A stretch of 64,000 bases of DNA from Octopus vulgaris. Taxonomy: Eukaryota. A model generated the notes under the pieces. The model saw nothing but the letters and a program-made list of their open reading frames with translations. It was not told the origin of the DNA and did not search any database. A program made the position numbers and the translations under genes. Every line of letters starts with the position of its first letter. The stretch's first letter is position 1. Below, one piece after another: positions 1,322 to 44,913 of the stretch. The stretch spans positions 53,630,001 to 53,694,000 of the forward strand of contig OX597817.1 in NCBI GenBank assembly GCA_951406725.2. The letters run 5' to 3'.

Positions 1322-1443
1322 TATTGTCAGCGAATGCGCTGAAATTACTTGAGGACTTGAAAGACAGTGACCCAAACTTTACAATTCGAAGGCACCATGA
1401 TCAGGCTCGAGGAGAAATTCAACAAGTTGAAAGTTTACGGAAT
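1322..1443 (+). CDS. LRCH: LRCH internal coding exon (coiled-coil region before the CH domain): xLSANALKLLEDLKDSDPNFTIRRHHDQARGEIQQVESLRN
   Basis: Acceptor ctgtttacAG (1320-1321) and donor GTAAGT at 1444, phase 1 to 0. The FTIRR...QVESLR motif matches the LRCH pre-CH segment as I recall it and joins exon 3049 in frame. An in-frame alternative AG lies at 1329-1330. Confidence 0.85.
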
Positions 1444-3048: not shown

Positions 3049-3186
3049 ACTATCCAAGCCCGATTAAAGGTGACGTTACCAGACAATTTACCTGAGGCAT
3101 TAAGGGATGGAGTTGTACTTTGTCACTTAGTCAATCAGATTCGTCCGAGAGCTGTAGCCACCATTCATGTACCTTCCCCAGCAGTA
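3049..3186 (+). CDS. LRCH: LRCH exon, CH domain N-terminal half: TIQARLKVTLPDNLPEALRDGVVLCHLVNQIRPRAVATIHVPSPAV
   Basis: Long polypyrimidine tract plus ttttgtAG (3047-3048), donor GTAAGT at 3187, 46 codons, phase 0-0. DGVVLCHLVN.IRPR.V..IHVPSPAV is the LRCH CH-domain signature. Confidence 0.97.
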
Positions 3187-5415: not shown

Positions 5416-5493
5416 CCTCAACTCACGATGGCAAAGTGTCGCAGGAATGTGGAGCATTTCTTAGAAGCTTGCCGGAAAATCGGTGTTGACCAG
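5416..5493 (+). CDS. LRCH: LRCH exon, CH domain: PQLTMAKCRRNVEHFLEACRKIGVDQ
   Basis: Acceptor tttttttctgcAG (5414-5415), donor GTAGGA at 5494, 26 codons, phase 0-0. The MAKCRRNVE.FLEACRK.GV motif is characteristic of LRCH. Confidence 0.97.
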
Positions 5494-18472: not shown

Positions 18473-18509
<37 letters not shown>

Positions 18510-21453: not shown

Positions 21454-21633
21454 GCTCACCTTTGTGCATGCGATGACATAGTGGAGATGTTACGACCTGC
21501 ACGAGTCGCTTTCACTGTTGAGCAGTTGATGTGCTTTCCTCGACTAACAGCTAAAGACTATCTCGTTACCTACTTCTGTGCAATCATTTTACTTTCCAAC
21601 CTCCTGCTTCTCTGGATATTTCCACCATCATGA
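21454..21633 (+). CDS. LRCH: LRCH proximal alternative last exon with a C-terminal hydrophobic (tail-anchor-like) segment: AHLCACDDIVEMLRPARVAFTVEQLMCFPRLTAKDYLVTYFCAIILLSNLLLLWIFPPS*
   Basis: Acceptor ttttgactttcatttcAG (21452-21453), phase 0, 59 codons plus TGA (21631-21633). It supplies the last CH helix (LC..DI.E......VA.TV..L) and a 21-residue hydrophobic stretch. AATAAA at 21711 and about 2.7 kb of UTR-like sequence follow. Confidence 0.85.
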   Translation, partial: AHLCACDDIVEMLRPARVAFTVEQLMCFPRLTAKDYLVTYFCAIILLSNLLLLWIFPPS

Positions 21634-24370
21634 AAAGGAATGCTTTGCATGGTGGACGCTACTACTTACTAACCATTGCTATTCCTTCCCCTCCTAAACA
21701 AGAAAAAAAAAATAAAACAAGCGTAAGAAGAAGAAACAACAAAAAAACAAAAACAAAGGATATTTTATCCTAACCATAATAATATACTTTCATTATTAAA
21801 TTGCAATTGATGATGATGATGATGATGATGATTATAATGATGGTTCAAAGAATAACATTCAGACCAATGAAAAAGTTTAAAAAGAAAAAGAAAACAAAAA
21901 CAGAAGAAAACTCTCCAGAAAATGACAATTTTTCTTTTTCCAAACTTTGAAAAAAAAAAAAAAAAAAAAGAAAAGAAAAAAAGAAACAAAAAAAGAAGAG
22001 AAAATGGTAAAAATTGTCAAGACCCTAAAATGGTGGAAACAAGTTATGTGAAGAATGAAGCCATCGTTTCCGTTACGTGGTCAGTGATTGTCCATTTTTC
22101 TGTTGTGGTTTACCTTGTGACTTTGTGGACGTGACTTCAACACCAATGATGGACGCTCATTGAGAATGGTTACCCATGACTGAATTCAGTTTTGGTGACC
22201 ACATTGCGACATAACCCTACATTGCACCGACAGTGGACCAAAAAGATTGGTAGCAGAACAGACATTCTTCCTTGAGGCAGTTTTTCATGGAACCAGTGCC
22301 TCTTCTAACCTGACAAAAATCTACACTTCTCTTTCTGTTGCTGCTGCTGCTACTACTACTACTACCACCAATACTACTACCAATATTACTACCACTACTA
22401 CTATCATCATCAATGCAAAAACTAAACAAATATTCACCCACCATGATGAGGATGATAATAATGATTATATTAATTCTTGGATGTTGCCGAGTCAGTCATT
22501 CGCTCCTATTATTCAACTAACTTTTCCACTGTTGTGTTGCCATGGGGCCAACACTGTGCCATGCCACCACAAGAACATGCGACACCTCCCATGACCCCTA
22601 ACCCAAGCCCAAACAATCCTTGTTTTGTCCAGCTTTTTTTTATTTTTTTTTTTGTTTGTTTGGTTGGTGAAAAAAAGAAAAGAAAAAAAATGAAAAGAAA
22701 TAAACAGATGAAAACATAAACAGTGATGACTAATTCAGAAGCTGGAAGACGAAACCCCCCACCCCCGCTTTTTTTTTTTATCTCCCTTCTAACCCTAACC
22801 ACCCCTAATATTGAACATTAACTACAAAAGAAAACAACTCCCTGCTCTCCACAATTAACTTGCTTCATCCTTTTGTTTGTTTCTCCATTAAAAAAAAAAA
22901 ACAACCAACCAACCACACACACACACACACAAATGTGTATTCATGTTTCAATAGACTGCCAACAAAGGGAGAGAACCAGGCTTTTAAAATTTTTTTCCTT
23001 TTGGCTGTGATTTTTGGTTTGCCAGCATCAAATGATAATTTTTTTTTTTTGTATCCTCCCTATCTATTTTCTGTCCATCAGTCTTATACTTTCTCTCCTT
23101 CTGTCTCTCTCTTTCTCCCTATTTAAGCTTAAGCATCTGCTCTTGCCTGTTGTCTTTTTCTTTCTTTTTCTCCTCTACACAACACCAACCACACACACAC
23201 ACACACATGTTGTTACATAAATAAGGTTAACAGAATTGGATGTAATTTAAGCCAAGATTTTGTTGAGCCAAACATCAGGTCGGCTACATATCAGGGGAAC
23301 AATGTGTTGATTGAAACCTTGGTTTCGATATGTAATCCCGTTAACTTTCCACAGAAGAAACACACATCACACTCCACATTCCCATCTGAAGAACTGATTG
23401 AATCCTTTTATGTTGTTACATCTCAAAATAGACAAAAAATATCACACACACACACGTACAAAATACTTATCTCTACTAAAACTATGGAATGGCATGTATC
23501 TTGACCAAATTGAATGCAAAATGTCCTGCTCTGTCCAATCTTCTTTTCAACTAACCTCACTGCTCAACCGGTTCCCAACAATGGATAATAATGCAATTGA
23601 GACTGAACTTGTCAATATTTTCAAATTACAAATTTTAAAGGAAAAAAAAGAAAAATTTCAGAAACAGATGGAAACCTCATTAGAGGGGAATTATTTTGTT
23701 TTTCAGAAAAGTTTCCTTTATCTCCCTCAGGAATTCATGTAAATGGAAGCAACTAAATTGGTGCAATAACTTATATCCACCCATCTTTCAGAGAAAAAAG
23801 CACAAAGAACTTTTACATACTCTCTCGCTTTCTCTCTCTCTCTCACACACACACAAACACATACACACACACTCACTCACACAGATATATAGAACACAGC
23901 ATGTTTTAGCAATGCAGTTAGAAATTCAATCATCAATAATAGCAGGAGCGAAGATATTGTAATGTTGCCTAAGCAATATTTAATCCTAATATTTCGGGTA
24001 AAATGCCCATCTTCACAAAGCTGTTAACATCTTAAGGAACTGAGAGCAGGAAGTTGTGCATCCTTTATGTCGGCATGCTGATTCACGATGAATCATGAAG
24101 GATGCAAAACCTTTACCCCACTCATGTTCCCTTAACACCTTCACAAAGGAGCATTTTACCTAAAATATTATACTTAAATATTTCTAAAGCAATATTTCAT
24201 TATCTTTGTTATCAGTATTTAATGCTTGAACTGTATTGTTGTTGCTACAGCCTTTTTGAAATACACACTTTCCTACATATGCTGCAATACTTCAAGGACA
24301 CTACAACACTCTTCTATATATATATATTTAAAATTAAATTTGGGTAGAAATTGATAATAATCAATTAAAA
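21634..24370 (+). other. Probable 3' UTR of the proximal (TM) LRCH isoform; 3' end uncertain
   Basis: About 2.7 kb without recognisable SINEs or MITEs in an otherwise SINE-rich intron. It is rich in A/U tracts, with AATAAA at 21711 and ATTAAA near 24333 and 24363. Confidence 0.45.
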
Positions 24371-24421
24371 CCAGTGGCCTAGCATATTTTTAAAAAAATC
24401 TGAAGATTAAAAATTTTTTTA

Positions 24422-24669
24422 CATACAAAATTTAGAGGACTGGCCACTAAAAGTGGACAGCCTATACGCTAGATATAGACGCTAAAATCGCCATTTTCCA
24501 TGAAGAATTTGTTCTCGAAGAAAAAACTCAGCAAAAAACCAAAATGTAAAAATAAGCAGGTTTTTGCTGAGTTTTTTCTTGAGAGCAAATTCTTCGTGGA
24601 AAATGGCGATTTTTACATCTATATCTGGCGTATAGGCTGTCTACTTTTAATGATCAGTCCTCTAAATTT

Positions 24670-24675
<6 letters not shown>
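24422..24675. mobile_element. Foldback MITE, about 255 bp, TA-flanked
   Basis: tacaaaatttagaggactg...ctcagcaaaaa pairs with tttttgctgag...cagtcctctaaattttgtgta, with a short central spacer. Confidence 0.8.
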
Positions 24676-24711
<36 letters not shown>

Positions 24712-25537
24712 GGCAGTGGATTGGTAGATTCATTTGTGGTGAGCAAGGGCAAGATAACTTGCCGTATTTAAGTATGGCCCTTTTTGTTCTGAGTTCCAAT
24801 CTCACTGAAGTTGAATTTGCCTTTCATTTTTCTGGGCTCGATGTCATTGACTCTCTTTATCCGCACTGGTATCTAAGATACACAGTAAAAAGACAATACG
24901 TGTGCATGTATATAATTCTCTGTGTGTCTATTATGTATATGTGTATATATGTCAATGCGTGTGTGTGTGTGTAAATTTTACATTGGAAACTTGGAACATT
25001 CCAACCAGAATGAAATAATCCATTTTCTTTTTTGTTTTTCTTTGTATTCTTAGATTTTACTCTTGGCCCTTTTTTAGGACCACATTCTAGCTATTTATTC
25101 CTAAACAAAGTAGGTTCCCCCAGTCTTTCTCCTCTTGCCTTCCTCCGGTGATAAACCTTCCTCACACAAACTTATAAATTTAATCAGAGAGCTTAGTTTT
25201 TGTCTGTTAAACTATCAAATAGCCCCAGACATTAGGAAAATTCTGGAATTTACTGTGTTGTGTTTGAATGGAAATCTTGTATCATTCCAGCAGAGAGGAG
25301 TTGCAAACTAATTCAATACTCTACTCCCCTACATGTGCGTGCATCGCACACACACACACTCACACACAAATATAAATAAAAGCATAAATTTCATGTATAG
25401 TTCATGCTTTTTCTCATCAGCTGTTAAGAGAAACACTGAGTTTAATGGTCTGTAATTAACAGAACTCTTAATTACTGTGGACTTATTTCTTTGTGTTTAT
25501 ACACAATCCTCTCTCACTGTTTGAGTGTGTGTATATG

Positions 25538-25588
<51 letters not shown>

Positions 25589-26356
25589 ATATATGTGTGT
25601 GTGTGTATACATACATTAAGAGGAGTAATTTACTTGAACTCTCTGTCTTTGTTTCTTCTAATGGAAGAAAACAAAAAAAGTTGGTGGAAAATTTCAGATT
25701 TACCATTATTATTATTTGGGGAATCTGTGGAGCAACTGTCAAAACAACCAAAGAATTTGCCATTAAGTCCTTTTGTGTCTGCCTGTGGATCAATAGACTA
25801 AGTACCTGCTTAATACTGGGGTCCGTATGTTAGGTTGTACTTCTTCCCAAGGTTTGTGTTGCTGTTTTCTATTGGAAACAATTTGAGCAAGGTTGTGGTG
25901 AGAAGAAAATGTTGAGTGTCTGACTGAATACCTGGTGGTTGTTAGTTCCCATCCATTACATTTTGAGTTCACTCCCTATCTAGAACTATGTTTTGTCTTT
26001 CACTATACTGGGGTACATTAAATAAGTACCAGTTATCTACTGGGACCAGTATCCTTGACTTTAAGCCCCCTGAAGTTTGTGGCATTGTGCCGGATCACAT
26101 TTTCATCGTTGTTATACTAGTAATGTTTTTGTTTTTTGTTTTTGGCTAAGAAAAAAAAAAAAAAGAGGCAATCAATGAAGCTCCCTAAACTATTTCCTTA
26201 CCATTTTCACTGGTCGAATATTCCCCAGACCAATGCAACAACAATTCTTCCTTCTTTGGTCATTCATGTCTTTTTCAAAAACTCTGAATGTTAATATACA
26301 TACTTGTGTTTGATTGTGTATGCATGTATTAATACAATATAATGGGCCTATTTGTG

Positions 26357-26393
<37 letters not shown>

Positions 26394-27185
26394 GTGTATA
26401 TAATGTTTAATGTAACCTGTGCCTCTCCTCACCCGGCTCAACCAAACATTTTTCTGATTCACCTCATCATTCAATACATGTTACTGAAGTTATCCTGTAT
26501 TTGAACCGCAAACCTCTCGATTCAGAACTTCACTATTTTCTACAGACTTCCAAGGAAACCTGTTAGCCCTTTTAAATTGTGTGTATGTCTGTATGCATAG
26601 ATGTATGTATGTATGTATGTGTGTGTGTTTGTTTGTATTCTTTTTTGCCTTAAGTTATTGTTTTTCCTTTTCTTATTTTTTTTCTTAATTAACTATGAGT
26701 TCATTAGTGGTTGTCAGTATACTTCTGTTTACTGTTATCCGTACTAATTACATTTAGTGCCTTAGACCATGTCTATAGTAACTCTTCAACATAGCCGGCT
26801 TTGAGTAGTGCCTGCTTCTTCTATCCTTTTGATCACTGACACCATTATAATACCACCACCCCTTATATATACAATGTGGTGTGGAGGATGAATACATGGC
26901 TATGTAAGGTACACACACCACACACTGTATGTTGTGTTTGTGTGTGTGTATGCATTTAATTAGGTTTCTGGACTAAGTCTCTCTTCTCTGTTCTTCTGGT
27001 TTGAGTCTTCATTTGTGATCTTTGTTGGTTTGGGGACAGCAGACTGCAGTGGAACAAAAAAAAAAACAGTTACATCATTTTATGTTGACTTGTCCCTTCA
27101 GCATTGCTTGTCCTTCTCAAAACTCATCATCATTATTATTATCATTGTTGTTATTATTATTATGCTTATTATTATTATTATTATT

Positions 27186-27400
27186 AAGGTGAAGGTGGTG
27201 AGACTGCTGAATTGGTAGAGCGTTGGTGACACACTTTGCAGTATTTGCTCCAGCTCTTCATATTCTGAGTTCAAATCCTGCTGAGGTTAACTTTCATTCT
27301 TTCAGGGTTAGTCAGCCAAAACTAATGGGGTTGTCAGAATTGACTTACACTCTGGCCTTGTGCCTAAATTAGAAACATTGTTGTTGTTATTATTATTATC

Positions 27401-27438
<38 letters not shown>

Positions 27439-28060
27439 CATTATTATTATTAAGGTGGCCAGCTGGCAGAATCGTTAGCACACTGGACAAAATGCTTAGC
27501 GGTATTTTGTCAGTCTCTACAATTTGAGATCAAATTCCACCAGATTCGACTTTGCCTTTCATCCTTTCGGAGTCGATAAATTAAGTACCAGTCAAGAACT
27601 GGGGTTGATCTAATCGACTGGTCCCCTCCCCACAAATTTGAGGCCTTGTGTCTCCAGTAGAAAAGGTTATTGTTATTACTAAGTTGGCGAGCTGGGAGGA
27701 TTGTAAGCATGCTGGACAAAATACTTAGCTGTATTTCATTCGTCACAACATTCTGAGATCAAATCTGCTGAGTTCAACTTTGCTTTTCATCCTTTCAGGG
27801 TCGATGTAATTGACTAGTCCCCTCCCCCAAAATTTCAGCCCTTGTGCCTATGGTAGAAAGGATTATCAATGAGGTGGCGAGCTGGCAGTATTATCAGCAA
27901 ACTGGACAAGAGGTGTAGTGGCATTTTGTCCATGTTTACGTTCTGAGTTCAAATTCTGCCGAAGTCAACTTTGCCTTCCATCCTTTAGAGGTCAGTGAAA
28001 TAAAAACCATTCGAGTGCTGGGGGTTAAAGTAATCAACCCACCCACCCCGGCCCCCAAAT
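27186..28060 (+). mobile_element. Head-to-tail cluster of four family-A SINEs separated by (TTA)n tracts; similar cluster at 44914-45740
   Basis: aaggtgg..agctggcag heads at about 27186, 27452, 27680 and 27871, each followed by the core block. Confidence 0.85.
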
Positions 28061-28876
28061 TGATCTTTACTTCTGTATTAGAAGGTTAAGGGTAGATGTA
28101 AGTTGTATAAACAATATACTAGGGTTTCATATTTGGATTTTCAGCAAAGGAATACAAAACTAAAGAAAAGGGAGAGGTTTGAGACGGGAATCAATAGTTT
28201 TTGACAGTGTTGTTGTCTTTGGTAAAATATAACCATTGTTGTGGTGGAGATGGGAGTCCAAGAGTTGTGAGTTCAAACCCAGTTAGTGATACTGAAGTGA
28301 GTTGTCAGTTAATGGCTGAAACTTGTCCTATTACTTTCTTAAGTGGTCATTAAACAAGTTAAGAACATAAAAGGGAAATTAAGGAGTGGTTTGAGAAAGG
28401 GAGAGATTATCTGCTGAATATCTTACCTGGCTGTAAGAGAGAACAGGTAAGAATATGAAAAAAATATGAAACATATAGGAGCTCTGCTGGTTCCAATCCT
28501 AGGTTTTCGGTTGTTTGGTCAACTGAAGCAACAGACTCATTGAATTTGCATATGAGTGGCTGAATGTTCCACAGATACATTAATGTAACTGTCAAGGTGA
28601 CACTGTGTATGACAAGGCTGGACTGTTTCAGCCGTGAATCTTATTACCTGGCTGTGAAAGAACAGGTAAGAATAGAAATAGATGGGCAAAGAATTCTACC
28701 TTGTCTAATCTTGGACATAGGCACCAGTAAAACCTTCTTTCTGATGCTGTTGCTCCATGTAGATCTGCCTGGCATCAGACAGTTGAACAGGAACAGAGAA
28801 TGGAAAACAGTGGCTTTTAAAGCAAGACTTTGCACATTTGGTGCAGAGTCACAAGTTGGATTCAACAGAGAAGGTA

Positions 28877-28917
<41 letters not shown>

Positions 28918-31878
28918 TGGTTGGATGTGGGTGTCTTTTAGTATGTAGTGGCAACATTGAAGAGTTTTCTTGAAACTTTTCCAACTTGCCACTATTAACG
29001 GCCTTTATAATAATAACAATCCTTTCTATTATAGGCTCAAAGCCTGAAATGTTGTGGGTAGGGAACAGTTGATTACATCGACCCCAGTATTCAACTGGTA
29101 CTTATTTTATCGACCCTAAAATGATGAAAGGCAAAGTCGACCTCAGCAGAATTTGAATGCAGAATGTAAGGATGGACAAAATGCTGCTAAGCATTTTGCC
29201 TACATGTCAATGATTCTGCCAGTTCTTCACCTTATTAATAATAATAATAATAATAATTATTATTATTATTATTATTATTATTATTGGGAGATAGCTAATC
29301 TGATTTCCACCACCTGTCCCCTCCCTCTTCACAGTTTTGTGACCCATATTGTTGATAACAGCTTGTAGTTAAAAACTGTATTGGCTCTAGATTGAAGAAT
29401 ATTCTGGTTATGTTGAATATTAATTGGGAAGCAGGCAGCTGGGATTGAACCTGTGACCAGGAGCTGTGTCATGCATAGGCTATTGCATGAAACAATCCAT
29501 TAGAATGGTTTATAGCTTAATATCTGGGCAGAAGGCAGTAATATATTCTAAGAGTTACAGGTAATGACATAATCTTGTCAAGCGGTGTGTGACATGATCT
29601 GGGGATCAGAATGAGTAACGTGATTGAACAGCATGACAGGTGACAGAGTGGTGGTGCTGGTGGAGGGTAGTCTTTTGTCATTGTGACACAGCAGTATGAA
29701 GTGTGACAAAACCTAGTGACGAGACACAAGAAAAGCCAATGACGAGGTGTGACAAAACCTTGTAGTATGGGGTGTGACATGGACTGTGGCAAGGCCCAGT
29801 GATGTGACATTGTGATACAATAAAACCCAGTGACAGACAAAGTGAAACAAAAGCCGGTGGTGTGTGACAAGAGAAAACTTATTGATGTGGAAAGCAGTAA
29901 GAAGGTTATTGGTAGGCAAGACAGGTGGCAGTTGGGGTGGGATAAAGTCTATGTGGGTGTCATGGATTTGCCATGTTGCTGGTGAGGAGGAAACATCTTG
30001 TGGTGGTATATTTATTGGCTCTTTTCAAATCTTTGGTTTTCATCCTACCAGTGTCACTAAAATGAAATACCAGTCACGTACTGAGATTGAGAAATAAGCT
30101 AACCCTCATCCCCATCAAAATTTCAGGCCTTGTGCCTTAATTCAAAATATTTACACACAGGTTCTGGGGCCTGCTTTTGAGATAATATATATGATATGGC
30201 AAAAAAAAAAAAAAAGGCTGCGAGCTGGCAGAGACGTTAGCACACCGGGCCAAGTGCTTCGCGGTATTTCGTCTGCCGTTACATTCTGAGTTCAAATTCC
30301 GCCGAGGTCAACTTTGCCTTTCATCCTTTCAGGGTCAATAAATAAAGTACCAGTTACGCACTGGGATCAATGTAATCGACTTAATCCTTTTGTCTGTCCT
30401 TGTTTGTCCCCTCTATGAATAGCCCCTTGTGAGCAATAAAGAAATATATATGAAAAGACTATGTGGGGTTACGGGTAGAGGAAATGGTATTTTGACAATT
30501 GTTGGGTTAAAATGGCATGGAATAGGTGAAGTGGAAGTTGGATTGTTAGGATAAGTTTATTGAAATTTAGTATTAAATGGTATGGTTCAGTGTTGTTGAT
30601 GTCTATAGTACCCTGCTTTGATTAAACACCCATGTGATGAAATGTCGTGTATCTGCGTGTGTGTCTATGTACATTCAATTCCATATTGGTTACCTTCCCT
30701 TACCTTTGGCGTATGCTGAAACCTTTGAATGTTGTGCTCCAGCTTGGTCACATTCCATTAAGTAAAACAAGTAAGCGATATATAAACTCTATCATGTGTA
30801 TTGAGTACTCTTTCTCATTTGTACATTAGATGAGTGTGTGTTTAATACATATATATATCCAAATGTTGGGCATGTGGATATCAGGTGTAGGGGAGCAATA
30901 TTTTCTATATTTAAGATATCATCCAGTAACTCCCATGGACACACACACACGCACACACACATCCATACACACATACATTCAGTGATGTTATTTTGTAATT
31001 CCAGTGAGTCTGAAGTTGATGAATAAATCCACCAAGAAGAGAGCTGTCAGATAGAAAGCCTTGTGGTATTGGTTCCAAACCTCTGGTCTCTGCGTTCAAA
31101 TCCAGCCGATGTCAACTTTCTCTTTCATTCTTCTGGTGGTGGAGGGGTTCATAGAGAAAAAAGAAAGTATCTCTGGATTGTTGGAAGAGTAAGAACATCA
31201 AACTGGATGTCTTTCAAGGATTGATTCTAGCCATTTGTGTTCTGGGTTCAAATATCAGCTTAGCCTACTTGGGTAAAAGTCTCTGTTTGGCACCACCACT
31301 CAATCGCTCGGTTTGGCACCACTACTCGGCAACACTGTCGCTCAGTTTGGAACCACCACTGTCTGGTCTGTGGGTACCTTTAGTGGGGTCTACTTGCAAG
31401 TACTTGGACCTGGTATCCAGCTTGATAATACCGTTTTCCCTACCTCTACCACTCCCACTTATAACAAAAGTTATTATTATTATTTCTAATTTGGGGGGGG
31501 GGGGTCTCTGTAAAGTTTGATAATTTTTTGATAGTAGTTTCAATATGCGAATTCTTTGGTAGTTGTCTCGGCACCAAGTACCACCAAATCTCAGACAATT
31601 CACCATCTCAAATGAAATGGTAGTTTGGTTTTTTTGTTTTGTTCTACTTTGGTTTTACACCCTTACCTGTGTCCAGTTTGAGCCAATCAGTTATCATCAT
31701 CATTTCTCTGCTTTTCCATGCTAGTATGGATTGCATGAGTCCCTTATTGTCCTTTCTATCCCTTTTATGAATTTCCAACATTTTGAGATGAATCTTCACT
31801 GCTTGAACCCATGTCTTCCTTAGTTTCTCTTTCACTCTTTCTTTCTACAAAGACCTGCCACTGTTTACACCACCTATC

Positions 31879-31879
<1 letters not shown>

Positions 31880-31930
<51 letters not shown>

Positions 31931-31932
31931 CC

Positions 31933-31971
<39 letters not shown>

Positions 31972-32125
31972 ATCTATCTATCTATCTAACTATCTGTCTG
32001 TCTGTCTATCTCTATCTATCTATCTAACTATCTGTCTATCTCTATCTATCTATCTATATCTATCTGTCTATCTATATCTATCTGTCTATCTATATCTATC
32101 TATCTATATATATATATACATACAT
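31880..32125. repeat. (TATC)n/(TGTC)n compound microsatellite; other long SSRs at 6370-6460, 7070-7157, 12500-12572, 14390-14495, 33885-34165, 36530-36692 and 63865-64000
   Basis: Direct reading. Confidence 0.95.
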
Positions 32126-32598
32126 ACACACCATACACATGAATGCAGTCAGATAAACTGCACCTTCCACCTGTCAACACATAATTGGTTCACTGTCTAC
32201 TTGAAAAGACATCATTGTCAGGCCAGCAGTGTAACATGAAACTGAAAATGTTTCATTTTCCTAAGTTGTTAGTGTGGATTTGAAACATATCAGACTCCAT
32301 TGAGTCATCTCATCTTGGTGTCAAATAATATGTATACCAGTGATATACTGGTGTCATGGGTTTCATCCCAATTCATCATTTAGTTTAACACTATCTCCTG
32401 GCTCTTGAGTGTCTTTGTTGGAGTCCACTCTGTTGCCATCTCCATCTACCAAATATTCTGGTTATGTTGAATATTGATTGGGAAGCAGGCAGCTGGGATT
32501 GAACCTGTGACCAGGAGCTGTGTCATGCATAGGCTATTGCATGAAACAATCCACTCGCAAACTTTTGGTTGGCTCAAGGCTTCTTGCCCAAAATGGCA

Positions 32599-33294
32599 TA
32601 CAGTTCTATATTTAAGAGATGAGAAATTATGTACATAATTTACATTTGACGGATATTTGACCTCATCTTGTTTGTTGTTAACAGAACATTTCGACTGATA
32701 TACCCTCCAGCCTTCATCAAGTGTCTTGATGAAATTTCGAACCTGGGTTCACATTCTTAAGGTATTTTTCGATGTTGTTATTATTACTATTATTATTATT
32801 ATTATTCAGGTCACTGCCTGGAATCGAACTCAGAATCTTGGGGTTAGTAGCCTGTGCTCTTAACCACTACACCCTATACCCATGGGCATATGGTGTAGTG
32901 GTTAAATTTCAAAATTTCCCAAGTCACCTGATGAAGGCTGGGGGGTATATCAGCCAAAGCATTGTGTTAACAACAAACAAGATGAGGACAAATATGATTA
33001 TTATTTATTCAAGTCACTGACGGGGATTGAACCTGGAATCTTGGGATTAGTAGCCTGTGCTCTTAACCACTACACTATATGCTCATGGGCAGTTATGGAG
33101 CAAATTTTAGGGCTTATAAACCTATTATTTTTGTAATAAAGGGTTGGGTTTGAAATTCCACCAGAACACCTGATTAAGGCTGGAGAGTACATCAGCCGAA
33201 ACGTTGTGGTAAAAACAAACAAGGTGGGGGACACCTATCTGTCCGTTGTAAATATTGTACTTAATTCCTCATCTCTAAAATATAGAACAGTGTA
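32599..33294. mobile_element. Foldback (Penelope-like/retrozyme-like) element with long inverted arms, three hammerhead-like cores and two antisense tRNA-like segments
   Basis: The left arm (32599-32760) is the reverse complement of the right arm (33140-33294). CTGATGA-A-GGCTG-loop-CAGCC-GAAAC variants lie at 32724-32681 (-), 32924-32967 (+) and 33166-33209 (+). Confidence 0.7.
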
Positions 33295-33965
33295 GTTGGA
33301 CATGTTTTGTGAGGGCAAAATTGAAATATATATAATGAAATTTATCTGGGTTTACAAGTTATGGTTGGGTAAATCTGAAATATATTTGGGATAATCCAAT
33401 AGGTTTTGTTTGGATAAAACTGAAGTATATCTGGGATAAAGTCATATTTAATGTGAGGGTTAAATCGAAAGGTTTAATGGGCAGTGTGTCTGTAAAAAGC
33501 AGTTGCTATTTCCCATGTCATTTCAAACTATTTTTGTTTAGTCAAAAGCAGAGAGTGGGTTGGTGGGTGAAGTGGAGGTAACGGGGGAGAATTGTTTCAT
33601 CTATTTTTCATTTTCTTTTCATTGCTCAAGAAACCAGTTTTGGGTTTTGTCTGGGTGGGGGGAATTAAAAAAAGAAAACCATGTAACTTTTTGTAGGTTG
33701 ATTTCTTGGTGAAGCTGAGAATCATAGGTCTGTGGGTAGGAGAAATAGTAGTTTGGTGGCTTATATCCCTTGCTGAATTTCATTACGGGGCAGAGGGGTC
33801 TTGAAATATCAAAATAAAGGACACAATAATCGTGGCTTTAACACATTTTGATAATGTATTTGTTGAACTTGGGTTGAATAACATATCTACATGTCTGTCT
33901 GTCTATATATCTAGATCTGTCTATCTATTTATCTGTATATATCTATCTATCTGTCTGTCTGTCTC

Positions 33966-34037
<72 letters not shown>

Positions 34038-34086
34038 CCTATCTACCTATCTATCTACCTACCTACCTACCTATCTATCTACCTAC

Positions 34087-34143
<57 letters not shown>

Positions 34144-34990
34144 TCTTTGCTTGTCTGTGTGTGTGTATGTGTTAGTGTTTACATCTGCGCTCACTTTTAT
34201 AAAAGTCCCCAGCATTCAAACACTGTTGTTGGTACTTCTCTGTCTTATAATAAAACATCTGGTTGCTTTGTGCCTTTGAAGTTATGTGAACTAAGAGATC
34301 CCTTACTTGGAAAACAAGTAAGGGGGAACATTTGGAAGGGCATCCAGCTGTAAAACAAATGGTTCAACCTTTTCACCTTGGAGCATGCTATTTTGTATAA
34401 GTTAGGCAATCTAACCAGCAGAGTTATGTACCTTACCTAGGGGCCCTAAATTTGTGGCTCTCGAACAGAGGTTCTCAACATGGACAGTACCACCCTGAAG
34501 GGGGTGCTGGACCTCTTGAAGGGACGATCAGGCTCTAAGGGGCCCTGAGATGACATAATTACTATACTTAATTGTACCTCTTGTAGTAATTATATTATAC
34601 ATGATAAACCTAGTAATGATTATTAAAATAAAATGAGAAGGAAATGGTGCGGCCATTTCTAGCGGGTGTAGAATCTACACAATAGCTCGACTTGATATAG
34701 AAAATTTGGCAAGATCTCATCGGACACAGGGAAGTCATTCACTTCCAATGTTTAAAGTAAATTTACAGCTTTTCTGGTTCTGTAGTACAAATGCCTTGTT
34801 TTCGTAAGTTTAGAATTAAAATCTTCCACCAAACCTTAGTCACAATTTATGTTCCTAACACTAGCTTAATAATAACTAAGTTATTTTACTAAATTCTGTG
34901 TTTTATTCAAAATTAATTGAAAGAAACACAGCGCATCTCAAAATAAATACAGTAATGAAAGGGTTAAAATATATAATAGAGAAACAATTC

Positions 34991-35219
34991 TTAACCCTTT
35001 CGATACCAACCTAGCTGAAACTACCTCTGGCTCTGTAGTACAAATGTCTTATTTTCATAAGTTTTGAATTAAAATCTTCCACCAAACCTTAGTTGCAATT
35101 TATGCTTCTAACACTAGCTTAATAATAACCAAGTTATTTTACTAAATTCTTTGTTATATTTGAAGTAATTGAAAAAAACACAGAACATCTCAAAATAGAT
35201 ATAGTAATGAAAGGGTTAA
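34991..35219. mobile_element. TTAA-flanked piggyBac-type MITE (~225 bp); other copies at 7531-7757 (opposite orientation), 34770-34967 (partial), 42946-43166 and 43254-43483
   Basis: TTAA|CCCTTTCG...TGAAAGGG|TTAA termini and a shared internal sequence (ctgtagtacaaatg..ttttgaattaaaatcttccaccaaaccttagtcacaatttatg). Confidence 0.85.
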
Positions 35220-35659
35220 AGTATATAATAGAGGAACAATTCTTAAGAGCCATGATTCTAGAAGTAAGGATTGATTTTTGTCAGTGTGCGTGTGGTCAGT
35301 TTGTGCAGTACCTTTAAAACTACAGTCATTCTAAGAAATATCTGTCCAGCCTGGCATCTACCAAACAGCTCTATCACATTGAATGTGTTTGAGATATTTT
35401 TTATATATCTATATTTTTTATTTATCTCTTAGAGGAAGAAATCCAGAACCCATTACCCCATTCTGAGTCTTGAGGGGCCATATGGGTGACATTATAATGG
35501 GCCGTGGTTTATGGTTACCTCCTCCCAAAGACAATAACAATCCTTCTGAGAGGATTCTGCACAGTTTTCTTCTATGATACAGGTTTGGTTGTTTGACTCA
35601 TTAACTCTGATCATTGGAGACTTAATTGAGTTTGTTCTGTTACAAGTATTCAGTCATCT

Positions 35660-36120
35660 GGTGTCCTGTCTGCCTTTCGCAAGACACACAGTGTCCTTTT
35701 CTTCCCCTTCTCATGACAGTGTTTCCCTCTTCCTCTCAGGACACAGTGTCCCTTTCTTTCTCCCAGGACACAATGTCTCCTGTCTTCCTCTCAGGACATA
35801 ATGTCTCTCTCCTTCTCCCAGGACACAATGTCTCCTACCTTCCTCCCAGGACACAATGTCTCCTATCTCCCTCTCAGGTCACAATGTATCTTTCCTTCTC
35901 CCAGGATACAATGTTTCTTTCCTTCTCCTAGGTCACATGTCTCTTTCCTTCTCCCAGGTCACATGTCTCTTTCCTTCTCCCAGGACACAATGTCTCCTAT
36001 CTTCCTCTCAGGACATAGTGTCTCCTATTTTTCATCTAGGACACAATGTCTCCTATCTTCCCCCCAGGACACAATGTCTCCTATCTCCCTCCCAGGACAC
36101 GATGCCTCTCTTTCCTTCTC
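35660..36120. repeat. Pyrimidine-rich minisatellite, ~25-28-bp unit (AGGACACAATGTCTCCTATCTTCCTCTC-like), roughly 16 copies
   Basis: aggacacaatgtct / aggtcacatgtct cores recur at a regular spacing. Confidence 0.88.
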
Positions 36121-36609
36121 ACAGCTCTTTCAGTCTTCCCCACATTCTTCTTCTTCCTCTGAGATGCAAGTTCACTTCCTCTCAAACGTTTGGCTGATAT
36201 TTCTAACAGGAACTTCCTGAAGACTTTTGTCTAAACAAAATTCACAAATCTCCCTTTCCATTTCTGAACTTCAAATGGCAATGAAGAGGGATTGAACCCT
36301 AGACTACATATTCAAGCATTTCCATTCTCTCCTTCTTATTTGTGCCGTATATATATCAAAGACATTGATTTATGTATCTTAAATATACTTTTGTTCATAT
36401 CAAACATGTTTAAATGAAGAGAGAGCTGAGGATTCTCTCCAGTTTCTATTCTAAGTTTCTTGTTTATTGTTCAGAGTAGCAACAAAGCCATGTCAAGGCT
36501 TCAAATAAACTGCACTACACATCTCTCTTGCTTTCTCTCTATCTGTCTGTCTCTCTCTCTCTCTTGCTCTCTCACCCTCTCTCGCTCTCTCACCCTCTCT
36601 CGGTCTCTT

Positions 36610-36694
<85 letters not shown>

Positions 36695-39633
36695 GTTACT
36701 AAATTTAAACATTTGCTTTTTTTACGGGTGGCTCAGCTGGAGCATTTTAATAATTTGTTGCCAAATTTAATTTGATTTAGTTTTATAAATTTCATTTTGC
36801 TGTGATGTGTACAACTTTGTGTGTGTTTGTGCCTGTGAATGTGTGTGAGTACACGTGTGTGCATCTGTGTGTATGTACACTTTTCTGTTCTTCTGATAAA
36901 CATGCTTTAGTAATTTTTACGTCATTTCTTCCTTTCTCTTCACAAATGTCTAGAGATACGTGTGTGTGTGTGTTTGTGTGTGTGTTTTGCAGGCCAGGCT
37001 GACTGGTTAACAAGTTTACTTTTGCAAATATGGGGTTTTCAGTTTTGAATCTCGTGGTTTCGTATTTTGAGAAAGTATCTTCTATATCATAGCTCCAGCT
37101 CAGCCCAAAGTTTGTGAATGAAATGGGATTGGGGGGGGGGATACTGTTCTGAATCTCTTCAACTGGGCTGTTCATGTTCTTTAGTGGCAGACTCAATATC
37201 CGTGTCACAGTCTAACCCTTCCATTACCACCTCATAATCGGGTGTTCCCTAGTGTGGCAGTAACCCCTGTGTTATAGTTTCATAATGCCTTTCCCTCTAC
37301 TGTCTCGGGGTTTCTATGAAAAAATCAGGGGTCACTTAATAATCCCAATAATGGGAAACCCAAGTTTGTAGAACAAGAATCCAGTTTAGAAAAATTGAAT
37401 TTACTTTTTATTGAATGGTCCCTCTTTCATTGGAAAACTAACATTTGTATGTGTGTGTGTGTGTCTAACACACACACACACACATGCAAACATACAAAGA
37501 TTTTCTGCATTATAGAACCTCCTCCTTGGGTTGATAGAATAAAGTACCAGTGAAATGCTGGGGTTGCCTAAAATCTTTTCCTGTTGCTTTCAGTAACATA
37601 GGGTATGCTCCCTGTCCCCTTCTTCTGGCGTGTACCCACAAGAGAGGACGTAACTGACAGTTTATCCCTACAAACTATATCACAACACAGTATTTTGCTC
37701 TCTCTCAGTGTTAGGCAAGGGAGGAACCCACTTTATCATCCCTGTGATTATTGCTATTTAACTCTGGGTCAGCCCCTACAAACAAAGGCTTTTTATAGTG
37801 ATGACCGTTCCAAATTTTGGTGCTGTCTAGGACTGCATTATCTTATGTATTCTTCGCCTTTTTTAGGCATTTAGGTGTGATTTGAGAGTGAGTTGGCTGC
37901 TATATCTTGCAGGCTGAGTAACTATGTAGAGGCTACTTTGTTTATCCGTGTAGTTTTTGGTGTTGGATGGCAAGCAGGGTATTATTCGGGTACCATTGTG
38001 TATAGTGCATAGCGACATTACATCATGGTACCGTAATAGCAGTAGAGGCATGTGGTTGAGTGGTAAGGGTGTCGGACTCATGGTTGTATGATTGTGGTTT
38101 CAATTCCTGGACCGGATGATGTTATGTTCTTGAGCAAAACACTTCATTTCATGTTTGCTCCCTTCCACTCTGCTGGTAAGAAAGAGTAATCCTGCAACAG
38201 ACTGGCATCCCATCTGGAAAGAAATATATATGTGTATGTATATATATATATATAAGTTCAGCAAAATTTAGATTCAGATGAATATAGTATTTTAGTTAAA
38301 AGCACCAGAATTTTGTATGGTATTATCCATATAAATCAAATCAGGTGATTATAATCAAAATAAGCAACAAGGATATCTAAGGTAGTGTAGTACAATCGTT
38401 TCATGCTACTTCATTTTATTAAACACTGTGAAATAAGTATAAAAATGTGCATTGTTCGTTTAATTAAAAAATTCTATATGTGGCTGAAGATTGCTCGAGA
38501 TTTTAAAACTGATGTAATACTTACAGTGTTTAATAAAATGAAATAGCGTGAAATGATTGTACTACACTACCTTAGATATCCTTGTTGCTTATTTTGATAT
38601 ATATATGTATGTATGTATATATATGCCTGGAAACTGGTCCTCTGCTCCTTACAGAGTAATGTGGGCTAACCATGGTGTAATGGTTGTTGCAGGGTGTAAT
38701 TCCATCACTAGTTACTTCAGCCGGCTGTGTGTGAGAAGAGAGAATGCTAATAGATACTACTCCAAATAGTGATATTTAACTGCGGGTCAGCCCTGATCCA
38801 GCTGACCTATGATCAAAGACATTCCAACCGTGACCATCCTGTCTTTCATTTAGACATAGTTTACCTAGGACTACATTATTGTAATGTGTCCGTCCTCCTT
38901 TTTTCAAAGACTGTAATGCGTGACTTGAGAGAAATTTAGTTGCTATTTTTAGCAGATTGAATTACCTTCCCCCTACACCCTCCACCAATACTGGCAATGG
39001 TGGTGGTGGTGGGGTCTAATATTTGTACAAAACTAAAAGATACCAAAAAAAGGTCCATGTTTTCCACTCTTGGTTGTCTGTCTGTAATAATGTCACCCAC
39101 AGTCCCGTGTCTCTGTCCTCAGAATCTTGTGTAAATTAAAACTTTTTTGATAAAAACTAATCCACAACTTTACCTTTCTCTCTTTGTCTTTTTCTTTTCT
39201 TTTTTTTTTGTTGTTATTACATGTTTGTTTTATTTTTGCTTTAATTATGAAATTTCTGCATCAAAGAGGATCGGGATGAGTTGTTAACCTGCAGGACTAA
39301 ATGCTGTGTAGTATTTAATTCAGTTCTTTACTGCATAGGGAGGGAGGGGTGAAGCCCCTCCCTCCATCACATGTATGGCTGGTTGCATTGAATTTTGAGT
39401 TCACCAGTGGGAGATAATTGCATGCTACCTCTGCCAGTAAAACCAGATCCTGTGATTTTCGCCTTCCTTGGCCTTATCAATGATAGACATTCATGGTTAG
39501 ACATAGCAATGATTTCTCCTTCACAATACACATATTGAATCCCACTGTCTATTCAGACACTAGTACTGTGATTAGCTAGTGGACTCATTAAAAACTAATT
39601 AATAACAACAGAAACAGTGTTAATGCCAAAAGG

Positions 39634-39771
39634 TAATATTTATCCCCTCTTAAAAGTGGATCTTGTGTTAGAACACAATATACTGCATTAGTATCCCGAG
39701 GGAACATCATGGTAACTGTTTGAGTGTTTTGTGTTCTGAGACGTCCACTTTTAAGTGGGAATTAATATTAC
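39634..39771. mobile_element. Degenerate foldback MITE
   Basis: taatatttatcccctcttaaaagtgga..agaacacaa pairs with ttgtgttct..tccacttttaagtgggaattaatatta. Confidence 0.6.
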
Positions 39772-42700
39772 GTGTATGTGCATGTGTGTGTACATGCGTG
39801 TGTGTACATGTGTGTGTCCTTGTCTTGACATCACACTGGTTGTAAGCATCACCATCATATAAGTGGTGTCTCATTTCCTCTTATTCCATAAAGATGAACA
39901 AAAGGTGAAAATCTTGTTTTGGACATGGGTGAGGCATTGGGTGGGGGTGGGAGGCAAAAGATGTTTAATTATGGCTATCCTGGTGGCAAGTTGACCTACT
40001 GCGCCATCGCTAAACAACAGGCCTCCCCAGTATTTCCACTGTGGTTGCCTCCATCATTACCTCCAGACTTAGTAGCAATAATGATGAGGAGGAACGCAGT
40101 TGCAAGGGTTGACTGGTTCTGCAAATGTAGAAAGAGACTCAGCATGACTGGAAATGAAAAGGTGACAAAAATAAGAGGAGAAACCAGAAGAGTCTCGTTT
40201 GAATGGAGGTCGGGTAAGCTGGTGTAGAGGCAATGGGGCATAGCAACCAAGATGGGAATGGTTTATTTTGGGGAATAGTAAGGTTTGTTGTATGCCAAAT
40301 TGGTGACTTAACTGGAAACAAACTTGTAACGAACCTTCATCACTTGCATCATGTGACTAACACAGGACAATGGAGATTAGATTACTTGTTGAAGGCAAGC
40401 TGAGGTTTCATCTCTATTTTGTTGTATTTAGGATGACAGACATAGGTGATGGTCGGTAGATGTGCTAATAGAAATAAGGTCCTGGTGCATAAGGGTCATA
40501 GCTGTTTTAGTGCTGGGGCTTGAGGGATAATTCTGGGAGTTCATAAATTACTCTGGTTGGGGATAGGTTTGGAATTCTTTTCTAAATGTCAGGAAAAGCA
40601 TGAAAGCATCTTCCTGATTGAACTACCAAGTGGCCCCTTAACCTGTTGTTTGTTGCATGAACATCTAGTTTCACATGTGGCAGTAGTATGAGGACGTGCT
40701 GCAACAGTGTGACGCTGCATCCAGCATTTGTCGGTGAGTCCCTGCTCCTGGTGGATGGTGCCTTTGCACTACTCGAGCAACAAACCCTTCAAGCCATGTG
40801 TCTGTTTGGGTTGTTGTTGGTGAGGGTTTTACGTGGTCAGAGTGCAGATCCTACTTCAACATTTTTTAGTCGTCTTTTACAACATAACAGAGACATTTTG
40901 TGGTGATACTGTCCACTTAAAGGCTTGAAGATCAATTTTGCTGTCAACCACACCAACACCACCATCAATAACAACTGTAGCAGTATAAATGACCCCCTTC
41001 CTCCCCCACCAATCTCAAAGCAACAACAGAAATCAAAATTACACCTGAAAACAAAAAGAAAAGTGAGGAATTATTCCAGCAGCGTTGATAGAAGTCCTCA
41101 CTCTGCAAGCTGTGACTTGACCATTGTGAAATCTTGTCATTATTATTCTTGGGGTAAAGAAGAGAAGAGAGAAGCAAAAAAGAGGCTGAAAGTTTGAAGA
41201 TTTGGTAGAACAGCCGAGTACCTGTTAGCTATTTACATAACCCCACCACTTCTAACAGTTAAACTTACAACATCAACAACAGGTAAACATATAAATACTG
41301 CAGCCACTTCGGCAAAAACATCAAAGGAAATAACAAAAACAACAGCACACAAGAAATATCATCTTTATTGTTGTAAATATAAAATAACAGTGAGCTTGAT
41401 GTAACTGGACAAAACAAAATGTAAAGAGAATACTCAGAGGAGCTCTTGTTAATAAAACACCTCCAACTGATCATCTGCTATTGATTACGATTTTTATGTG
41501 ATTTGGGAATTTTTGAAAAGTTGACTAAAACCTTCTGGAAGGGCTTTTGAAGCCTCCAACTCTCTGAGAAGCTCAGATTAGTGTCCCCTGTGTCTAAGGT
41601 AAGTGGTCTCTCTAATTCCTTTCTTTCAACCAACATGGCCATATTCAGAGTGCATTGTATAATTGCAGAATGGCCTGGCATTGGTTTGGAAGCAGAGTAA
41701 CCGGCCTCATCATCATCATCATCATTTAACGTCTGCTTTCCATGCTAGCATGGGTTGGACGATTTGACTGAGGTCTGGCGAACCTAACGCCAACCACTCC
41801 GAGAGTGGAGTGGGTACTTTTATGTGCCACCGGCATGAGAGCCAGTTTGGTGGTACTGGCAATGGTCATGCCCAAATGGTGCTTTATATGTGCCACCTGC
41901 ACAGGAGCCAGTCCAGCGGCACTGGCAACGACCTCGCTTGAATGTTTCACGTGTCACTAGCACAAGTGCTAGTAAGGCGACGCGGTAACGATCACGCTCA
42001 ACCTGGTCACAATCAGTGAAACCAGGATGTTCAGGATGCATACACTTATGTAGTTTTGGTGATTATAAGATGTCCACATCTTTTTGTTACTGAATTTGAG
42101 CAGCAAGCTGGGAATATTGTTTGAGAAAGGTTTAGAACTTAAATTAAGTGGACCTTGTTTGGCTCAGATGGTAAGTCAGTGATGCTAAGCATAAACAAGG
42201 GAGAAGGGAATGCCTTCAAACTAGTAGCAGTTATGCCAGATATTTTAAGGTGTGTTGAAAATCATCATTTGGGGTCTTGTGGTTTGTGCAAGCACAGTTG
42301 TTTGGTTAAGAAGCTTGCCTCTCAACCAAATGATCTCAGGTTCAGTTCCACTGTGTGGTATCTTGGGTCTGTGTCTTCTATTAAAGCCTCTGGTGGCCCA
42401 AAGTTTTGTGAATGAATTTAGTAGTTGGAAACTGAAAGAAGCCCATTGTGTGTGTGTATGTATGTATTATATATGTATACTGCATGGTGATTGTAGTCAC
42501 AAAAGCTGTGTCATGTTTGTAGTCTTCAATAGAAAGATATCTGGGTTGAGGGAGGGAAAATGTTGCCCTGCTTGGAAACTACTGAGGGTTGGCAACAGGT
42601 AGAGCATCCAACTTGTAAAAAAAATCTCCTTCAACAAATTTCATCTGATATTCCAGCATGGAAAAATGTATGTCACAACAACAATAGCAATAATGAAGCT

Positions 42701-43881
42701 GGCTGCATAAATATATTTGAACCACAAACTAAATAGTTATTTTTATTTAGTTTTGACCCCTCTTTGTTGTGAATTCTGTGAATTGTGATTTAACCCCAGG
42801 TCAGCACTGAATCAACAGATTTATGAGCAAAATTGTTCCATCGGTGACCATTCTGTTTTATATTGTTTTGTTTCATACTTCTTGTATCCAGTGTACTTTT
42901 CTGTGTAATTTTAGGCCCCTCTTTTTTTTTTTAAGACTCCCTCACTTAACCCTTTCGTTACCAACCCGGCTGAAACTGGCTCTGGCTCTGAATACAAATG
43001 TCTCATTTTCATAAGTTTTGAATTAAAATCTTCCACTAAACCTTAGTCACAATTTATGTTCCTAAAATTAGCTGAATGATAACCAAGTTAATTTACTAAA
43101 TTCTTTGTTATATTTAAAATTAGTTGAGAGAGACACAGAGCACCTCAAAATAAATGAAAGGGTTAAATAATGTTAACACATTCATAAACAAATACATATA
43201 GATCTACTTTTAAACTACTTCTCTGTATATCGAATATATATCGTCATCTTGTTTCAACCCTTTCATTACCAACCTGGCTGAAAACGCCTCTAGCACTGTA
43301 GTACAAATGTGTTGTTTTCAAAAGTTTTGAATTAAAATCTTCCACCAAACCTTAGTCACAATTTATGATCCTAACACTAGCTTAATAATAACTAAGTTAT
43401 TTTACTAAATTCTTTGTTATATTTAAAATGAATTGAAAGAAGCACAGAGCATCTCAACAGAAATACAGTAATGAAAGGGTTAAGCTGTTCGTTAATGGTC
43501 CCAGAGGTGCCATCATGTGTAGAGCTGACCAGGTCCACCAGTGCCCCCACCCATCGCTGGCTGTCCCATGCTGTCAAAACAATCCGGTTTATTCTTTTAT
43601 TGGTTTCAGTTATTTGGCTGTGGCCATGCTGGGGCACCACCTTTCCTGCGTATTCCTCACCTTTAGATTTCATTTGTTTCCCTATTAGCTTATCATATCT
43701 GTCACAAACACATTATTTTCTTTGCATTTAAACAAAGATGCATGGGTCATTTTTCTTTGATTTAAAAAAAAAAAAATAATAGTAACCACAATAATTTAGG
43801 TGGTGTTTTTTGGAAACATCATTGCTGTTCTGTTTTCTTAAATAGCTCTAACCATATTCTCATTTTTCTCTCTTTTTGCAG

Positions 43882-43995
43882 GGGCGTATGTGTTCGGCCC
43901 ATGACATCTTGGAGGAGAAAGGACTTGCCAAAGTCGCTCTGACCGTCTCATCTTTGGTAGCGTCCACCGGCAGTACAAAGCAGGCTGTAGTATGA
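43882..43995 (+). CDS. LRCH: LRCH distal alternative last exon (soluble C-terminus): GRMCSAHDILEEKGLAKVALTVSSLVASTGSTKQAVV*
   Basis: Acceptor catttttctctctttttgcAG (43880-43881), phase 0, 37 codons plus TGA (43993-43995). The ILEEKGL.KV..TV..L motif matches non-TM C-termini of vertebrate LRCH isoforms as I recall them. Confidence 0.9.
   Translation, partial: GRMCSAHDILEEKGLAKVALTVSSLVASTGSTKQAVV

Positions 43996-44860: not shown

Positions 44861-44913
<53 letters not shown>

Follow-up and report, generated by a model that had tools for sequence, protein, structure and literature searches.

An octopus LRCH gene with two homologous alternative last exons, one of them encoding a predicted membrane-spanning tail

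The 3' end of an LRCH gene of Octopus vulgaris lies on contig OX597817.1 in the 64,000-nt stretch from 53,630,001 to 53,694,000, which we call the window and to which all plain coordinates refer. LRCH proteins form a link between exchange factors of the DOCK family, myosin VI, septins and actin. The two terminal exons of this gene in the window are alternative 3' ends of one LRCH gene: the proximal exon encodes a C-terminus with a predicted transmembrane (TM) helix, and the distal exon, 22 kb further downstream, encodes a soluble one. Very probably, the window holds the 3' end of a single-copy LRCH gene that ends in one of two alternative last exons, and these exons derive from an old tandem duplication.

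A pair of alternative last exons in LRCH

Five LRCH coding exons were located in the window (Table 1) by tblastn with public Octopus LRCH proteins as queries, and their splice borders were read from the sequence. The initial annotation of this DNA had proposed that a phase-0 exon is followed by two in-frame terminal exons, and direct reading of the sequence bears this out. The last constitutive exon is 78 nt long and in phase 0; it is preceded by a pyrimidine-rich AG acceptor (..TTTTTTTCTGCAG) and followed by GTAGGA. Both terminal exons are in frame with it, start in phase 0 behind a pyrimidine-rich AG acceptor and contain their own stop codon. The acceptor flank of the proximal exon reads ..CTTTCATTTCAG, and the exon encodes the 59-residue peptide AHLCACDDIVEMLRPARVAFTVEQLMCFPRLTAKDYLVTYFCAIILLSNLLLLWIFPPS (TGA at 21631-21633). 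The corresponding flank of the distal exon reads ..CTCTCTTTTTGCAG and leads into the 37-residue peptide GRMCSAHDILEEKGLAKVALTVSSLVASTGSTKQAVV (TGA at 43993-43995). With pyrimidines at 16 of 18 positions versus 14 of 18, the distal acceptor tract is slightly richer than the proximal one. The phase-0 GT sites within the proximal exon are only weak donors (GTGGAG, GTCGCT, GTTGAG and GTTACC). Since both exons are terminal and the internal donors are poor, the choice between them is an alternative-last-exon decision. A pattern scan placed an AATAAA 78 nt past the proximal stop codon; the first AATAAA past the distal stop codon occurs 1.6 kb downstream.

Table 1. Positions of LRCH coding exons and associated features in the window.
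Feature	Position	Strand	Evidence
LRCH coding exon immediately before the CH domain and reaching into it (..LSANALKLLEDLKDSDPNFTIRRHHDQARGEIQQVESLRN)	1322..1443	+	tblastn, splice sites; 5' split codon, 3' end phase 0
CH-domain exon (TIQARLKVTLPDNLPEALRDGVVLCHLVNQIRPRAVATIHVPSPAV)	3049..3186	+	open reading frame list, tblastn, AG/GTAAGT borders, Pfam CH
CH-domain exon PQLTMAKCRRNVEHFLEACRKIGVDQ, last constitutive coding exon, branch point	5416..5493	+	direct reading, tblastn
Proximal alternative last exon, TM type: last CH helices, FPRLTAKD linker, 21-residue hydrophobic helix, PPS, TGA	21454..21633	+	
Predicted membrane-spanning segment YLVTYFCAIILLSNLLLLWIF, then three residues	21559..21621	+	hydropathy, AlphaFold helix, homologous protostome segments
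Candidate poly(A) signal AATAAA of the proximal exon	21711..21716	+	pattern scan
Distal alternative last exon, soluble type: last CH helices (..DILEEKGLAKVALTVSSLV), short free tail ..STKQAVV, TGA	43882..43995	+	

The proximal and distal exons are homologous duplicates that share the same phase and encode the same structural element. Their first 26 residues align without gaps and with 10 identities, exactly as the initial annotation had it, and the alignment scores 46 with BLOSUM62; when one of the peptides was shuffled 200,000 times, neither the identity count nor the score was attained once. The identities fall mostly on apolar positions expected in helix-bundle packing (I, V, A, V and L, plus C and D), and 16 of the 26 positions differ. 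At the DNA level, 56% of 78 nt are identical between the two exons, and third positions show no excess. A DNA-level repeat search between and around the terminal exons detected no exon similarity past the coding match, only microsatellites, a minisatellite and copies resembling short interspersed nuclear elements (SINEs). Profile hidden Markov models (HMMs) of both exon types found no third related exon in the window. In a six-frame search of the 2.8 Gb assembly (227 contigs) each LRCH exon was found once, and all of these matches lie within the window. The LRCH gene is therefore single copy for the region covered.

Both junctions, GVDQ/AHLCAC and GVDQ/GRMCSA (the slash marks the exon border), are present exactly in RefSeq/UniProt proteins of Octopus sinensis, O. 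bimaculoides and O. vulgaris, and both exons are therefore already annotated. When the protein collection was searched with the CH region joined to the proximal tail, the proximal peptide formed the exact C-terminus of O. sinensis isoforms X7-X16 and of many RefSeq and UniProt entries of O. bimaculoides, and the distal peptide that of other entries from O. bimaculoides, O. vulgaris and Argonauta. The proximal exon is identical to the O. sinensis isoforms at 58 of 59 residues and to those of O. bimaculoides at 57 of 59. The distal exon is 100% identical to O. vulgaris isoform X5 (P0103). Over the exons in the window, public Octopus models are 98-100% identical and bear the names 'DISP complex protein LRCH3-like' and 'LRCH2-like'. 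The exons for the leucine-rich repeats (LRRs) lie upstream of the window; near-identical octopus proteins carry the LRR domains PF13855, PF23598 and PF00560. Octopus isoform models end in one terminal exon or the other and none holds both. In this sense the two last exons are mutually exclusive, as they had first been called, but this term suits cassette exons, and "alternative last exons" is the fitter label.

Distribution and age of the exon pair

Proteins with a TM-type end are annotated in many animals. Among lophotrochozoans they occur in gastropods, bivalves, nemerteans and a brachiopod; a further one comes from an animal that is likely a priapulid. The arthropod examples come from a shrimp, a millipede, a beetle and wasps, including one Trichogramma gene with both kinds of isoform, and the chordate examples from amphioxus, teleosts and mammals (the latter including an LRCH3-like protein of a hyena and LRCH4 of a primate). 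In the genomic loci of five species, the CH exon is followed first by the TM exon and then by the soluble exon. In locus coordinates, the TM and soluble exons lie at 24.9 and 27.1 kb in Lingula, at 32.9 and 36.8 kb in Lineus (the latter outside the annotated gene), at 16.4 and 21.6 kb in Penaeus chinensis, at 16.0 and 20.5 kb in the teleost Champsocephalus, and at 5.86 and 6.85 kb in Cebus LRCH4, where the second exon is soluble-like and lies beyond the annotated end. Ab initio gene models from Nucella (P0049), Pinctada (P0106) and Gambusia (P0181), together with P0121 and P0234, fuse the TM exon into the soluble exon and have chimeric C-termini. These fused models look like recurrent annotation artefacts, yet they confirm the exon layout. 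For annotation, the exon pair explains why models repeatedly fuse both exons or stop before the distal one.

Some of these loci and proteins have peculiarities of their own. The soluble-type terminal exon of Lineus longissimus (HQTCSAMDILEEKGTLRVAITVHALLNICNPNLSTV followed by a stop codon, with an AG acceptor, at about 36763-36870 in locus coordinates) is located 3.7 kb past the annotated LRCH end and appears to be unannotated. The Cebus imitator locus contains the LRCH4 3' end (CH, TM and soluble-like exons) plus SAP25 twice, at 5425-6947 and 10917-12439, 5.5 kb apart; this repeat is either a segmental duplication or an assembly artefact. The soluble-type exon of this species, 0.8 kb beyond the annotated LRCH4 end, carries an insertion (ESLCQPHHILEEEGASGRGLPYIAAVVHALLD). 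The Lingula locus has the same CH exon at 9022-9156 and at 17993-18127, probably through assembly duplication, and its LRCH is divided between two gene models, one with the LRRs and one with the CH domain. Fly-like LRCH proteins (P0179, P0188, P0189 and P0193) have TM-type ends in which ~50-100 extra residues separate the short helix from the last CH helix and several hundred lie ahead of the terminal hydrophobic segment.

All 22 cnidarian LRCH proteins retrieved (scyphozoan, hydrozoan and anthozoan) end in the soluble type. At the genomic level cnidarians are represented by the single locus of the jellyfish Rhopilema, in which a search of 10 kb of downstream sequence gave no TM-type exon; an intron of ~360 nt separates the CH and soluble exons. 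A TM exon was also not found in the one crinoid locus searched, that of Anneissia. Since cnidarians have the soluble type only, we consider the soluble exon to be the older form.

To date the duplication, we compared the octopus exons with models built from other animals. An HMM of the soluble type, built without molluscs, scores the octopus distal exon with 49.3 bits versus 9.0 bits for the proximal one. The converse is true for an HMM of the TM-type helices, built without molluscs or vertebrates, which gives 41.0 bits for the proximal exon versus 20.7 bits for the distal exon. A third HMM covers the TM part, that is, the linker and membrane helix, of lophotrochozoans and a priapulid. It scores the TM tails of beetle, millipede and shrimp with 16-23 bits, values that none of 300 composition-matched shuffles reached, and a wasp tail with 8.1 bits (2 of 300 shuffles). 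When 125 helix peptides were placed in a maximum-likelihood tree, 5 changes sufficed to account for exon type, compared with ~38 for shuffled labels, and the octopus TM exon falls within a supported set of 26 TM-only protostome rows. Among protostomes, the octopus exons therefore cluster by exon type rather than by species, as an ancient duplication had been expected to show. This grouping by type, which is common to the HMMs, the TM part and the tree, implies that the duplication predates the mollusc-arthropod divergence. Judged by sequence, the TM type was present already before that split.

The initial annotation had placed the duplication even earlier, before the split of molluscs and vertebrates. 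This claim stands as far as arthropods are concerned; for vertebrates it is not carried by sequence similarity but by gene layout. Several observations weigh against a shared origin with the chordate TM exons. An HMM built from vertebrate TM exons only prefers the octopus soluble exon (11.1 bits) to the octopus TM exon (2.0 bits). The protostome TM-part HMM scores chordate TM tails with -2 to 4 bits, and 8 of the 10 tails do not exceed shuffled sequences. In the helix tree, the chordate TM exons group with each other with support, their placement among soluble exons is unsupported, and in amphioxus the TM exon has a helix that resembles the soluble type. These results would be expected if the TM exons had arisen separately in chordates and protostomes from an ancestral soluble-type exon, each then gaining a hydrophobic end, so that the switch would be convergent. 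On the other hand, forcing all TM exons into one group makes the tree just 1.24 log-likelihood (lnL) units worse, with a p-value of 0.458 in the approximately unbiased test (p-AU), and signal fades fast in exons that are short and evolve quickly. The proximal position, phase and order are the same in a teleost, in primate LRCH4 and in all protostomes examined. Because position, order and phase agree, one origin is more economical, and we regard the convergent scenario as rather unlikely. A further caveat concerns an octopod-specific duplication, which the helix-only tree with its 30 columns does not formally reject: the difference of 21.4 lnL units, with a p-AU of 0.095, is suggestive only. 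Since this tree is underpowered, we relied on whole-exon HMMs and gene layout instead. That protostome and chordate TM exons share one origin, before the mollusc-vertebrate split, is thus likely, but not proven.

Completion of the CH fold and a predicted tail anchor

How do the two exons shape the protein? Each had been predicted to complete the last helix of the CH domain, and Pfam and AlphaFold agree on this point. With either exon, the match to Pfam CH (PF00307) reached profile position 104 of 109, with 45.5 and 48.2 bits compared to a cut-off of 26. AlphaFold models were computed for the last 171 residues of the TM form and the last 149 residues of the soluble form, with alignments of 19 and 22 homologues. 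The models have mean predicted local distance difference test (pLDDT) values of 88.8 and 85.7, and have in common helices at residues 118-122 and from 127 onward. In the TM form, helices 118-122 and 127-138 are followed by a six-residue linker and a helix at 145-167 (exon residues 33-55, pLDDT 86-97). The soluble form has helices 118-122 and 127-144, and its last 7 residues have pLDDT values below 50. In these models both exons complete the CH fold with the same helices. What changes is the surface of the domain: the last CH helices keep the buried residues, and the exposed face differs (~16 exposed positions).

The top Foldseek matches were the CH domains of calponin, GAS2, IQGAP1, transgelin and Vav, and the closest entries in a sequence-profile search of the PDB were calponin (1h67 and 1wyp), Vav and transgelin. 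The octopus LRCH CH domain fits type 3 (calponin-like, single) and not the CH1 or CH2 type of tandem actin-binding domains. No structure of an LRCH CH domain was found in the PDB copy searched.

The proximal exon had also been credited with a tail-anchor pattern that ends in PPS, and the hydropathy profile agrees with this assignment. Its best 19-residue Kyte-Doolittle window, LVTYFCAIILLSNLLLLWI, has a mean of 2.33 and is followed by 4 residues; the maximum for the distal exon is 1.06. The hydrophobic run extends over 21 residues of the exon (Y36-F56), after which only PPS remains. In the full-length orthologues from O. bimaculoides and O. sinensis (P0036 and P0007), the Kyte-Doolittle maximum within the first 60 residues is 0.13, and the absence of a signal peptide was judged by hydropathy alone. 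The only strongly hydrophobic stretch of these proteins is C-terminal (19-residue mean of 2.27); the next is one window at residue 118 with ~1.7. In all TM tails listed, 1-10 residues follow the hydrophobic helix. A C-terminal helix combined with the lack of an N-terminal hydrophobic segment is therefore what we observe, and it is by these sequence features that tail-anchored proteins are defined. The TM isoform appears to have a tail-anchored build, for which membrane insertion and topology are predicted.

Membrane insertion of the TM form, its topology, competition between processing sites and any difference in function between the two isoforms are inferred. Splicing from 5493 to 21454, probably followed by cleavage at the AATAAA that lies 78 nt beyond the stop codon, would produce a protein in which the CH domain is followed by the six-residue linker and the terminal hydrophobic helix. 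This form would be inserted post-translationally, with LRR and CH domains in the cytosol and ~3 residues across the membrane. Alternatively, the proximal exon would be skipped, the polymerase would continue for 22 kb, and splicing to 43882 would give soluble LRCH with a short disordered tail. The outcome may be regulated by competition of the proximal splice and poly(A) sites with the distal acceptor.

The proposed topology contradicts the published view of LRCH4, in which the LRR and CH domains are outside the cell (PMC7240100, citing Aloor 2019), and membrane insertion of the octopus protein is a prediction, not an observation. Reviews describe LRCH4 as a plasma-membrane protein with an LRR/CH ectodomain and a role in the capture of lipopolysaccharide (LPS) (PMC7240100; PMC7536344). 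By analogy, the C-terminal helix of octopus LRCH could be a conventional single-pass anchor that leaves the LRR and CH domains extracellular. The missing N-terminal hydrophobic signal in the octopus orthologue and the 1-10 residues past the helix make this arrangement improbable. Furthermore, CH domains are cytosolic, and so are DOCK and myosin VI, the partners implied by the name 'DISP complex protein LRCH3'.

We lean, if only by a modest degree, towards a general form of the tail-anchor proposal: the TM isoform would be an ancient tail-anchored protein that dates back at least to the protostome ancestor and perhaps to the bilaterian ancestor, that keeps its LRR and CH domains in the cytosol in all bearers, and that came about by duplication of the last CH exon of an ancestrally soluble protein. 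If this is true, the published picture of LRCH4 as receptor-like with an LRR ectodomain needs revision, and the coupling of a CH-surface change to the anchor points to isoform-specific partners. The conflict between the tail-anchor prediction and the published LRCH4 model is easy to test. Within the searchable library, no paper joins LRCH and 'tail-anchored'; the sole match was false.

The soluble end raises a different question. Its last residues, KQAVV, had been put forward as a possible PDZ-type ligand. We reject a canonical PDZ ligand at the octopus distal end, because QAVV has no S or T at position -2 and does not follow the class I rule. Many orthologues end in S/T-x-V: among the distinct soluble-type tails of other animals, from cnidarians to mammals, 26 of 58 have S/T-x-hydrophobic ends, far above the expectation from composition. 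Examples are QSAV in gastropods, QSTV in Lingula, LSAV in human LRCH3 and TSTV in Hydra, and TSAV also occurs. These tails suggest a conserved C-terminal peptide ligand across the family, in place of which octopods have QAVV.

Use of the two ends, related systems and neighbouring DNA

Some points count against the use of both ends in the source animal. The evidence for the two junctions comes from predicted (XP_) models that belong to this species and its sister species, the poly(A) signals were recognised by pattern only, and a search of short, transcript-derived proteins gave no octopus fragment, the best match being 73% identical. That the proximal exon is a conserved-looking relic which is no longer spliced in the source octopus, so that the distal end alone is used, would agree with the lack of a TM-end transcript fragment in that search and with the distal-end isoform (P0103) being the sole O. 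vulgaris protein among the named matches, but is hardly credible for an exon with an open frame, a canonical AG acceptor, an AATAAA 78 nt past its stop, one and two of 59 residues different from O. sinensis and O. bimaculoides, both of which have many annotated TM isoforms, and a type that has been retained across protostome phyla.

Both kinds of isoform had been attributed to vertebrate LRCH genes, which is confirmed by a review (PMC7536344, 2020) and by the sequences themselves. According to this review, a putative C-terminal TM domain is present in two of the three LRCH1 isoforms of humans and in the longest isoforms of LRCH4, and one is predicted for LRCH3; LPS signalling is supported by the TM form only of mouse LRCH4, and the difference between TM and non-TM isoforms is listed as an open question for the field (PMC7536344). 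The founding paper on the LRCH family makes no mention of TM domains or isoforms (PMC2923620). Octopus LRCH resembles mammalian LRCH1, LRCH3 and LRCH4 in family and domain order, with a CH domain that is followed by either a hydrophobic C-terminal helix or a soluble ..ILEEKGL.. end. As in a teleost and primate LRCH4, the TM exon is upstream of the soluble-type exon. In contrast to the single octopus gene, vertebrates have four LRCH paralogues. Their TM exons encode a longer linker and have no similarity specific to the octopus TM exon, and their literature assigns an ectodomain to the TM form, whereas the octopus TM form reads as tail-anchored. Public LRCH models from octopus and Argonauta have the same exons and junctions; they are predicted and carry no functional comment, and as far as their names show, the kinship and age of the exons are not stated.

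Tandemly duplicated alternative exons are typically homologous, in the same phase, specify the same structural element and occur one per transcript, all of which applies to the LRCH pair. Unlike cassette-type duplicated exons, both LRCH exons are terminal with their own stop codons, splicing is coupled to 3'-end formation, and one copy has gained an anchor. Cytochrome b5, with its membrane-bound and soluble forms, is an example of a tail-anchored protein with a soluble splice variant. Here too, a 3' exon decides on the presence or absence of a hydrophobic C-terminus and thus between a membrane-bound and a free cytosolic protein. In contrast to cytochrome b5, the alternative exon of LRCH also swaps the last helices of a folded domain, and the CH surface changes together with the anchor. 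The octopus exon pair and the mammalian isoforms were already known; the system is ordinary in kind and involves no new mechanism. The additions made here are modest: a homologous exon pair in fixed order (in protostomes, and in chordates by gene layout), a soluble form that came first, and a tail-anchor build that predicts a cytosolic body.

The intron between the terminal exons contains a minisatellite with a period of 27-28 nt in two blocks (35718-36120). SINE-like repeat copies, 73-88% alike and each preceded by an (ATT)n run, are located at 27440-27619, 27669-27764, 27859-28038, 30202-30381 and 44902-44997, the last of these 0.9 kb past the distal exon. The SINE-like repeat has no tRNA or Rfam match, and the Rfam and tRNA scans of the window were both empty. 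Finally, the minus strand at 60855-62060 harbors the remnant of a retrotransposon without long terminal repeats (non-LTR), which comprises a reverse-transcriptase fragment (Pfam RVT_1, 61875-62060) and then a 339-residue open reading frame with C2H2 zinc-finger-like motifs. This remnant is interrupted and flanked by (TATG/CATA)n microsatellite expansions.

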